A DNA stretch of 64,000 nucleotides from Utricularia gibba (GCA_002189035.1 NEEC01000002.1:992001-1056000); one strand, 5' to 3'; positions 50,546 to 61,391 are shown, counted from the stretch's first letter. The notes: a model not told the origin generated them from the sequence alone. Made by a program: numbers and translations.

Positions 50546-53500
50546 TCAGGGCTGTTGATCGCACGCTTGATCTTTTTCCTGGTCTTCCTCTTGGGTTGTA
50601 ACTGTAAAATCTTTCTTGCCATGCGCTGGAGCAATGATCTCTAAGCTCTTGAGCCCATTTTGCCTAAGATATGTGTGCAAGGGCAAACTCGCTTCTTGCA
50701 GTAGGCTCATCATGCTCACACGCCCGCTGCATGCGGTTGCTGGTTCTTGAAATGGAAGGCAATTCAAATCTATTCCTTCTTCATCACCTTGGCATCCAGG
50801 AGTCTGGATCTCTGATCCCCTCTCGTTGTCAAACAGTGATGACGCTTGAAGAGGGATGCTCTCGACCTCTGTTTCCTCCTGCTCCACAGCATGCTGAATC
50901 CTTCCTGCTGTTTCTGATTGGCGCTTCATCTTGCGCATCATCAAGGTCTTGAATCGCCTCTTGACAGTCATGCAGACATTACATGTGCATGTGGGCTTGT
51001 GCTTGCCTTTGCCACTGGGAGGCTGTATGCATACGATACAAGAGCAGCCAGATCGGTGACGTGGGTGTTTTGTAGTCATTGCAACCGACATTGTGGTTTC
51101 CCTGATCTCACTCCCGGTTGCTACTGCATTTCAGGCGGGTTCCATGACCGGAGCCTCAGTTCCATAAGGTGGTCTGCAATCATTTAGAAGTCAAAAACAG
51201 TAGGAATACAATACCTTTGTTTCTTCCAAGAAGAAATTGCAGCTCGCTGGAGCTCAGTTCATCTGGAGCAGAGCAGGAGCTCCTGATCCCAACAATTATA
51301 CAGAGTGATGAAAGGCTGTATATTGAATCGGCATTCGAACTATTGAATACAGTTGATTCAGGAAACTATCTTCTATACAAACCTTGTCAGGCCGCTCACA
51401 TTGTCTTGGCATGCCCATTTTGAAGGAACAAGGAAATCAGCCGGGTGTTTACGCCATTTTAAGCAAGAATCACACTGAGTGAACTGCTCATATTCACTGC
51501 ATTTTCCGCAAAGACGAGTCATTCAAGTTCCCATGATGATCATTCTAGGAGTATGCTCATTTAGTGGCCTTTTGGGAACAGGGGAAGAGTTTCACTACCC
51601 GGAGAGACGAACAACGAAGACACTTCTCTTTGCGAAAACAGGCGGCTCCTGACAACAAAGAACATCAGTTGAAAGCTCCGCAATGAAGGCTGGAAATGGA
51701 AAAGTTGTTCCTACTTCAAACTCTTCAAACTCATGATCATCCACTGAGAAAGTGCTTGGCTGAACTCTTGGAGGTGCCCTCAGCATATCCTGTACCTCTT
51801 CCCAAGTGAAACTCAGCTCCAATGGATCTTGCCCATCAATTAGAATCTGTTTGTTTTTCGAGCCAATGTTTCTTCTTTTGTGTCGTGGAAACAACATTGA
51901 TGGAGCTACGACATTCTCTTCAGTGTCATACAAGCTCCTGTCTGTGACTTGGGGACCTGCAATCTTAGACAAGACTCTCACGGTAAGATTCCGACTTGAG
52001 TTATTCTGCATGCTTTCCAGAGGTAGATCACAGTGAGAAGCACAGCCACCACTACTGGTATCAAGTGGGTCCTGCTCCATTATCAATCTGAGTGTTAATC
52101 AAGGAGCCATTTCTGAAACCATCGTACTTGATGCTACCTTGTCCAGATAGGTGCTAGTTGAGGCTTTTCGGCAACCCATCAGAAGCTTTCCGTCGGGATC
52201 TATACGACTGAAAGTCACTGGCAGATGAAGGGCCAAAGAAATGAGAAAAGAAGCTCCGGTGATAAGATAAGAAATCATACCAAATGTTGAAACCATACCG
52301 GTGTCTCCAGCTTGTAACTGCATTGATTGAATGAATGGGGAAACACCTTCCAAAACATACATTCTGCTTTTGTTGTTCGGCCAAAACCGGAACTGTAACA
52401 TCCATTCATTTCCTTTTACATCCTGAATCCTCAGAGGAAGGCCCTCTGGCCTTGTGATTGGCGGAAAGTATGCCTGCCATGTTTCATGTTTCAGTCAGAG
52501 GATATGCTGCTATCAGACAATGAAGGCATGTCTGAGTTCTGCACTCAGCACGCCCAGAAGATTGAAAGAACAGTAACCGAACATCAATAAACATATCATA
52601 ATGTTCAACATACTTCAGCACAGGATTTAGGGAGAACTAGACGACCAATCCGGCCAGCATCACTGGCACTTAGAAGCTTTTCAAACAAGGGAACAATGAT
52701 TGAGTTTGAATTTCCGATGATGAATCAAGGAGATTGCAAAATAATTTGATTAACAGACAAAGTGCATGTAATAACAGTGTTAAATCAAGGATACTCCCTA
52801 GACATTTGCTGCAGTTCCTGATCAGCTATTCGAGGATGGTAGCGCGCAAGTAGTTGATTCTTGATGATCCTTTCCACCCTTGCAGCTGGCACCCGAGGGA
52901 CAATGCAGGAGTTTTGTGTTGAAGCAGGACCAGAATCTGATATCTTCAGTGAGAGGCCAAGAAGAACCCCTTCTTGACAGGAAGATGATTCATTAGGTTC
53001 ATGCATGAAACCATCAGCAGACATGCTGATGCTCACGTTTGTCAAAGCTAATGGAGTGTTGTTTCGATCCACTGAATTCTCCTTTAAACCACAGGTTCTA
53101 ATTCTGTCATGCCGTGGTGCCTGCACTAGCCCCTGGAAAAGTAAGATTACACCAAACACTGCATGAGTATCTTCTACACAACTTACAGAAAAACGACAAG
53201 GTGCACTAAAATTCATAAAACTTACAGACGGTAACAAAGAATTGCCGGTGCAAATCTTGCAGCACAGACCACCGGTATCAAGAAGTTCAATCATTGAACT
53301 AGAAGCAATACATCCACCATGAAGGCGCTACCAACAACGGAAGGTCATGAAAAAGAAAACTAAAGTAAGAGAAGCTTCCCACCAAGCAGAATAATGAATT
53401 ATGATTAGCAGTTCATAAAAGTTGCCATCCACCTTCCCGCATGAGGTGCACTCTCTCCATCCTGAATCATGAGAATGGAAGGTTTCACAAAAGACCAAGT

Positions 53501-53775
53501 TTTTGTACACAATCCTGCCAAATATAACTGCTTTGTTTAGAAAATGGTACAATTTCAACAAATCCACAATAATCGATCGGCCAAAAAAACTCTGATCATT
53601 TGCACTTCAAACAGAGTTGAAAACAAACGAAACAGAAAAAGGCTCTGCTTTCACTTCTCAATGAATCATACCCACAGCTGGGACAGAGAGTCGCAAACGC
53701 ACCGGACTTCAAAGGCCATCCTTCAACCCATTCATCGAAACTCGAATTTTCGCATAATGGATTCATGCACTTCAT
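50546..53775 (-). CDS. VAL: VAL/HSI2-family B3 transcriptional repressor (PHD-like, B3, CW, EAR domains)
   Basis: MKCMNPLC...GWPLKSG...[94 protein letters not shown] and IDLNCLP (EAR). Confidence 0.92.
52711..52794 (-). other. U12-type (minor spliceosome) intron of VAL with a non-AG 3' end
   Basis: 5' site GTATCCTTG at 52794-52786 and branch motif TCCTTGAT at 52731-52724. No AG dinucleotide occurs anywhere between the donor and the conserved VPLFEK codons. Confidence 0.75.
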
Positions 53776-60684: not shown

Positions 60685-61391
60685 TTATTTCTCAAGAATG
60701 GCAACCAGCTTCTTGTGCAGCTCCGGTTTGTTAGCTCCGACAAGTTTGTCGATCTGCTGACCATCTTTGAGGAAGAAGAAAGTTGGAGTTGCTTTTATGT
60801 CCCATGAAGTGCTGAAATCCTGAAGCAAACAAATGTCTGAGAAAACTTCGCCTGTAGCTGATCCATACAACACAAACAGAAAGAACAACTCACTATAAGT
60901 TCATCTACATCCACCGTCAGAAACATGGCTGAAGGATACTTCTGAGACAGCTCAATAAAGTAAGGTGCAATCATTTTACAAGGGCCACACCATTCAGCAC
61001 TAAAGTTTGCAATCACCTGTTAGAATAACCAAGCCGAACACTCCTTAATTATGGAAAATTCACTAATTCCATGAGCAACTCAAAAAGTCCATCTTAGAAC
61101 CAGAGAAAATGGAAGGATTAGAAAATGATAGTCTCACAATCTTTCCATCCCTCTGAGCTTCGGCAATTTTCAGATTCCAATTTTCCATTGTTGTAATAAG
61201 CTGCACATTTCCACCAGCGAAATCAACATGACTATCGTCTTCATCCGCATTCCGAGACTGCAACACAAATGATTAAAATTGCAGGATGATCTCCCACTTA
61301 CATGCTAAACCATTAAAACTTACAGACATCTGGAATTGAATGCACATGTCAATGGAAACTCTCTCCTTACCTTAATAGCACAGATACCCAT
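60685..61391 (-). CDS. TRXH9: Thioredoxin h, subgroup III (TRX h9-type) with N-terminal acylation motif
   Basis: Exons 61391-61371 (MGICAIK), 61257-61138, 61016-60894, 60819-60685. WCGPC active site, [14 protein letters not shown] and LVGANKPEL. Confidence 0.92.

Follow-up and report, generated by a model that had tools for sequence, protein, structure and literature searches.

A VAL1/HSI2-type gene with a conserved U12-type intron that appears to have lost its AG acceptor

We analysed a stretch of DNA of 64,000 nucleotides (hereafter referred to as the window), which carries on its minus strand a VAL1/HSI2-type gene of 12 exons (Table 1). The gene was laid out by coordinates and phases only, and Pfam and protein searches were run exon by exon. 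The resulting coordinate and phase table showed all 12 exons to be without an in-frame stop or frameshift. Ten introns are GT-AG and measure 66-157 nt; the other one, between exons 4 and 5, is the subject of this study. The gene comprises 714 codons (2,142 coding bases) if that intron ends at AA and 715 codons if it ends at GG. Introns 3 (53133-53225, 93 nt), 6 (52218-52298, 81 nt) and 8 (51649-51714, 66 nt), all on the minus strand, are stop-free multiples of three, such that retaining any of them would add residues and not truncate the protein. Introns 7 and 8 are 66 nt each.

The domain searches identified zf_VAL1_N (PF25813, 33.1 bits; cut-off 27) and zf-CW (PF07496, 28.4 bits; cut-off 27.5), each on a single exon. 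The B3 domain (PF02362) scored 28.7 bits on one exon, slightly below the whole-protein cut-off of 30.1, and the last exon encodes a DLNCLP EAR-type motif. This order, with a VAL1-type zinc finger, B3, a CW zinc finger and a C-terminal EAR motif, is that of VAL repressors, and ..IVPLFEK.. and ..AYFPPI.. are VAL1/HSI2-type signatures. The best full-length matches were VAL/HSI2-type proteins with about 45-48% identity overall, the best named match being from Coffea canephora. The B3 exons were 91% and 84% identical to the best orthologue, as against 33-36% for the linker exons, which points to purifying selection on the gene. For exon 5, where the B3 domain starts, the 91% identity is to the Wolffia australiana orthologue P0070.

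No homologue exceeds 80% DNA identity, even in the B3 exon, which marks the lineage as highly diverged. A word search for transcript fragments of the same species gave no match to the reading frame of exons 3 and 4. A word search with the frame of the B3 exon returned fragments of at most 87% identity, none of them from the same species. An exhaustive representative search with the last exon recovered 149 VAL relatives, none with more than 80% identity; the gene product is thus very probably absent from the searched collection.

Table 1. Features of the VAL1/HSI2-type gene and of its U12-type intron (positions in the window)
Feature	Position	Strand	Remarks
VAL1/HSI2-type gene	50546..53775	-	ATG at 53775, TGA stop at 50548-50546, 12 exons
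Exon 4	52795..53132	-	338 nt, phase 2, terminus ...CAA ATG TCT AGG GA
U12-type 5' splice site GTATCCTTG	52786..52794	-	adjoins the end of exon 4
Intron, ancestral bounds	52711..52794	-	84 nt, GT...AA, without any AG
U12 branch box TCCTTGAT	52724..52731	-	sole A at 52725, presumed branch A
Candidate AT end	52717..52718	-	78 nt, 8 nt from branch A, in frame
Candidate CG end, after first G	52715	-	GT-CG, 10 nt from branch A, out of frame
Candidate GG end	52714..52715	-	intron 52794-52714, 81 nt, 11 nt from branch A, in frame, R-E-N-S-N-S
Candidate AA end (AA at ancestral acceptor)	52711..52712	-	84 nt, 14 nt from branch A, in frame, R-D-S-N-S; changed base 52711
Candidate AT end, after T	52710	-	15 nt from branch A, out of frame
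Exon 5, start of B3 domain	52614..52710	-	ends GAA/GTATGT; would begin at 52713 with the GG end

A reading made earlier from the DNA alone (hereafter, the sequence-only reading) had described a minor-spliceosome intron behind exon 4. We confirmed on the minus strand the exon end ATG TCT AGG GA, the 5' site and the branch box. The 5' site GTATCCTTG, directly after the exon end, matches the /RTATCCTT of U12-type introns (here and below, a slash marks a splice junction). The branch box TCCTTGAT, of the form TCCTTRAY, begins 63 bases into the intron and lies near its 3' end, with distances of 8, 11 and 14 nt from the presumed branch A to the three in-frame ends. By inspection, the 14 nt downstream of this A (TTCATCATCGGAAA) hold no pyrimidine tract, as is U12-like. 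The intron opens with GT and contains no AG, and so shows neither of the canonical pairs, GT-AG and AT-AC; about 4% of conserved plant minor introns are likewise non-canonical, so that the terminal pair is not strictly defining. A scan of the minus strand found no AG throughout 52794-52679. The first AG falls in the FEK codons (52678-52677) in the wrong phase, and its use would run into a stop; reading through the intron from exon 4 gives E-Y-P-stop. The sequence-only reading was correct on the exon end, the two motifs, the read-through stop, the missing AG and the phase of the first downstream AG, as well as on the lengths of the three in-frame introns and the distances of their GG and AA ends from the branch A. 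Rescue by a U2-type acceptor was rejected, as the first downstream AG lies 47 nt past the branch A, is out of frame and would delete the start of the B3 domain.

Neither motif is more abundant in the window than in shuffled sequence, with 7 observed versus 4.9 expected matches for RTATCCTT and 6 observed versus 12.6 expected for TCCTTRAY. The joint chance of the placement seen here, with one motif exactly at the exon end and the other 8-14 nt ahead of the next exon, was about 1e-7 as estimated from motif frequencies. The significance of the motifs lies in their placement and not in their abundance, and 28 distinct homologous introns show this placement as well. Elsewhere in the window, RTATCCTT occurs without an accompanying branch box. 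One such match, GTATCCTT at 60932-60939 (minus strand), falls within a thioredoxin coding sequence (..CAG AAG TAT CCT TCA..) and was dismissed as a chance match, not a second U12 intron. A second copy of the branch-box octamer TCCTTGAT (52784-52791, minus strand) lies within the 5' splice site GTATCCTTGAT, such that the same 8-mer stands at both ends of the intron; we take this repeat to be a coincidence of two overlapping consensus sequences. A search of window positions 1-64000 against Rfam gave no family at gathering score.

Arabidopsis HSI2/VAL1 (At2g30470) is a U12-intron gene whose splicing is defective in u11/u12-31k, u11-48k and u11/u12-65k knock-downs (PMC4892727, PMC3422263). To compare the intron in the window with those of other VAL genes, we aligned six B3-region fragments, which retrieved 80 VAL loci on host-plant contigs in metagenome assemblies, 12 of them cDNA-like and the rest genomic. 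From 66 loci we obtained 28 distinct genomic intron versions delimited at both ends. All 28 have the same phase, a GA/GTATCC start, a U12 branch box, and AG followed by T or C, and they follow ..(P)RITDQEL..SG plus GA. The branch boxes were TCCTTAAC, CCCTTGAT, TCCTTGAC, TTCTTAAC and similar sequences. Their lengths range from 89 to 2,039 nt, which makes the 84-nt intron of the window the shortest of the set; the distance from branch A to AG was 10-17 nt, apart from one group with 23 nt, with a median of 14.

The end of exon 4 aligns with ..PRITDQELQQISG-D of the orthologues. Like HSI2/VAL1 and its orthologues, the window has an intron in the same gene family, at the same position (past ..QQ(I/L/M)S(G/R), after the second base of the next codon, and before ..SNS/LNL..VPLFEK of B3) and in the same phase, with a matching GTATCC at the 5' site and a branch box of the same type. 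The homologous sites are used exactly in other plants, as cDNA-like contigs from these read ..GGAGA/TTCAAA... Two of the loci, L008 (cDNA) and L026 (genomic), represent one Brassicaceae-like gene (..KYTDKEVQQISGNLNLNIVP..) with an 89-nt GT-AG intron, and the Arabis nemorensis protein P0049 has a junction peptide identical to theirs. Given the position, phase and U12 signals shared with 28 VAL introns, including the Brassicaceae-like one, the comparison identifies the intron in the window as the positional orthologue of the established VAL1/HSI2 U12 intron. The central claim of the sequence-only reading, a U12-type VAL intron without AG that has to be removed for B3 to be read, finds strong support in motifs and positional homology; its lean towards a GT-AA junction finds less, as discussed below.

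Half of the homologues have weaker 5' sites (such as GTATCCAT, GTATCCAA or GTATCCCC), whereas the 5' site and the branch box in the window are both full consensus. In a group of nine loci (L018, L019, L047, L051-L055 and L058), the TCCTTAAC box lies 23 nt from the AG, beyond the usual U12 window, and the 5' site is weakened to GTATCCAAC; this intron could be a drifting U12 intron, could use another branch point or could be undergoing conversion towards the U2 type. In L022, L025, L038 and L043, the 5' sites (GTATCCCC) and branch boxes (TTCTTAAC) are both below the U12 consensus, and these loci are accompanied by junction peptides with an extra residue (..QQITSG-D..).

The sequence-only reading had proposed aligning orthologous VAL introns to find the ancestral terminus. 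The alignment gave a uniform answer: the acceptor position reads AG/T or AG/C in 28 out of 28 distinct homologues, and only the window reads AA/T, followed by the same TCA AA. The codon spanning the acceptor encodes Ser, consistent with AGT, in nine unspliced ORF fragments of other plants, versus Asn (AAT) in the window. From the AG in all homologues versus the AA in the window, together with these Ser and Asn codons, the alignment indicates that the AG acceptor was lost through a single-base event. A G-to-A change at 52711 and the loss of one G after the A run are equally possible and indistinguishable. Only the missing AG is particular to the present genome; the VAL1/HSI2 U12 intron itself was already known.

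The missing base might also be an error of assembly or base calling, the true sequence having G at 52711 or one more G behind the AAA run, in which case the intron would be an ordinary GT-AG U12 intron. The assembled bases in 52700-52730 read ...TCGGAAATTC at the lost acceptor; a single base separates the window from the state of every homologue, and the site adjoins a short run of A. However, neither a frameshift nor a stop interrupts the 2,142 coding bases, which suggests good local accuracy. Moreover, about 0.9% of GT-type plant minor introns are naturally without AG (from the counts of Larue and Roy 2023), which is far above any plausible per-base error rate, and a lineage with no more than 80% DNA identity to its homologues has had ample time for a real change. 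We therefore regard an error as highly improbable.

Loss of the acceptor AG is a classic inactivating change, and the gene could accordingly be a disabled copy in which the intron is no longer removable, so that read-through stops after E-Y-P and the B3, CW and EAR parts are never made. Several features argue against this. The remaining splice sites and all 12 exons are intact, and conservation is much higher in the functional domains than in the linkers. The 5' site and the branch box are full consensus, when half of the homologues are weaker at the 5' site, and an in-frame end with a terminal G is present at the optimal distance. A disabled copy thus seems very unlikely. Because the gene is otherwise intact and conserved, the intron is probably still removed.

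Where, then, would the intron end? The candidate ends near the branch box include three in frame (AT, GG and AA) and two out of frame (CG and AT). The AT end at 52717-52718 is unlikely as an acceptor, as its distance of 8 nt from the branch A is below every branch-to-acceptor distance found among the homologues. For the others, published work provides a frame of reference. Among conserved minor introns of plants (about 23,300), Larue and Roy (2023) counted 16,477 GT-AG, 5,903 AT-AC, 690 AT-AA and 115 GT-GG, with GT-AT (19), GT-CG (5) and GT-AA (1) rarer still; among about 73,700 conserved minor introns of animals, they likewise found one GT-AA. In mutational work, introns with a 5' G reportedly end in G or T, whereas those with a 5' A may end in any base; we cite this rule second-hand from the summary in Parada et al. 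2014, the primary mutational studies being Dietrich 2001 and 2005. Selection of the U12 3' site is said to rest largely on distance (Parada et al. 2014; Turunen et al. 2013), with an optimum of 11-13 nt from branch point to acceptor (Turunen et al. 2013).

The sequence-only reading had leaned towards the AA end, with D-S-N-S given as the sequence of VAL proteins at this place. Indeed, 44 full-length orthologues bear out D-S-N-S, and AA occupies exactly the place of the AG in all 28 distinct homologues. In this scenario, a real U12 intron would still be cut at its ancestral position as an 84-nt GT-AA intron, with R-D-S-N-S kept. Its distance of 14 nt from the branch A equals the median of the VAL homologues, and the choice of a U12 3' site is said to be largely set by distance. 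The AA end also leaves nine residues between the S of QQxS and LFEK (R-D-S-N-S-I-I-V-P), the same linker length as in most of the 44 orthologues. Against the AA end stand the counts, the rule for a 5' G and the optimum of 11-13 nt, all of which favour GG. A GT-AA junction is virtually unobserved, with one case in each of the plant and animal sets above, and the only partners reported for a 5' G are a 3' G or T. Plants are not known to have ADAR enzymes, the A-to-I editors of animals, and this counts against an AA end made usable by editing, a rescue that is known from animals. Such A-to-I editing rescues some animal GT-AA sites (Parada et al. 2014). We therefore consider it unlikely that the minor spliceosome still joins the 5' G to the terminal A at the ancestral position.

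Thus, homology favours the AA position, whereas mechanism favours GG. The GG at 52715-52714 has a terminal G, preserves the reading frame and lies 11 nt past the branch A, and on these grounds, together with the published counts of termini, we rate it the most likely productive acceptor. Overall, the explanation we prefer, with moderate confidence, is that a U12-type VAL intron of the GT-AG subtype lost its AG and is still removed by the minor spliceosome, most likely at GG. The sequences show the motifs, the positional homology, the loss of the AG and the integrity of the gene, and we infer the splicing, the use of the minor spliceosome in this species and the choice of end. In the sequence of events that we propose, a single-base change would have turned the conserved AG/T acceptor into AA/T. 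U11 and U12 would continue to recognise the full-consensus 5' site GTATCCTT and branch box TCCTTGAT, and the second catalytic step would accept a non-AG end within a short distance window past the branch A. The likeliest such end, GG, would yield an 81-nt GT-GG intron, and its use would put Glu-Asn in place of the usual Asp in the linker ahead of B3.

Two points count against the GG end. First, the AA end fits the protein spacing in the 44 orthologues exactly, whereas the GG end would lengthen this spacing by one residue; in some orthologues, too, the stretch is longer, by one or two residues. Second, CG (10 nt) and AT (15 nt), both out of frame, would compete with GG. By rough odds, if the intron is real and removed, GG would quite probably be the main end and AA would be an improbable one, with the remainder going to a mixture that includes the out-of-frame ends. 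Our absolute confidences are lower than these conditional odds, since they leave room for an unspliced gene and for an error in the assembly.

Such a mixture constitutes a further alternative, in which splicing is imprecise, with ends at CG (10 nt), GG (11 nt), AA (14 nt) and AT (15 nt); the mRNA would be partly in frame and the rest degraded, making this a hypomorphic allele. Turunen et al. (2013) describe the choice of the U12 3' site as prone to error and splicing at non-canonical ends as less efficient, two of the candidate ends are out of frame, and minor introns of the GT-CG and GT-AT types do exist. By contrast, the conservation of the gene at the domain level is consistent with continued function, and we judge imprecise splicing to be rather unlikely. 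It represents in its strongest form an idea of the sequence-only reading, namely that this could be a rate-limiting splice in a repressor of seed maturation. Since non-canonical ends splice less well, that idea appears plausible in general terms.

The preferred reading, removal at GG, can be compared with known minor introns. At the acceptor position, the window differs from the 89-nt intron of the Brassicaceae-like L026 and from all other homologues, which have AG there, in that it has AA and no AG. GT-GG U12 introns (human ARAF, BANP and SLC12A7, and the 115 plant cases) resemble the intron in the window in having a U12 5' site, a branch box and a 5' G. They end in a 3' terminal G without a preceding A, typically derived from an AG ancestor through a single change; the GT-GG minor introns of BANP and SLC12A7, for example, are AG in other species. 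In the described cases, however, GG occupies the old AG site, whereas in the window the old AG has become AA and the candidate GG lies 3 nt upstream. Unlike in those cases, use of GG in the window is predicted to shift the junction and add one residue. AT-AA introns, the commonest non-canonical class in plants (690 cases), indicate that an AA end is tolerated by the minor spliceosome. Their first base is A, which reportedly can be joined with any base at the 3' end, whereas the intron in the window opens with G, and a final A is exceedingly rare in introns of that kind.

After germination, VAL1/HSI2 switches off the programme of seed maturation, and the intron has to be removed if the B3 domain is to be read. 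The locus offers a clean natural example of a conserved U12 intron minus its AG in an intact gene, and a test case for whether the minor spliceosome chooses a 3' end by its distance or by its last base. No new mechanism is involved, as VAL U12 introns and non-AG U12 ends are both already documented; the twist relative to known cases is that the end which probably works is displaced by 3 nt upstream from the dead AG and does not coincide with it. If the GT-AA junction, which we doubt, proved true, U12 splicing would have a natural exception, fixed in evolution, to its rule for pairing the first base of an intron with the last. That exception would sit in a conserved developmental repressor, with a pairing that mutational work reportedly disfavours.

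The locus also carries a warning for annotation, as standard gene callers will mis-model this gene, just as the record of a Hibiscus paralogue already does. The Hibiscus syriacus protein 'HSI2-like 1 isoform 2' (P0075, KAE8715166.1) reads ..QQTSGEYPFDSKSS.. at the junction. KAE8715166.1 thus runs into the U12 intron (GA/GTATCC = E-Y-P), an annotation error caused by the minor intron.
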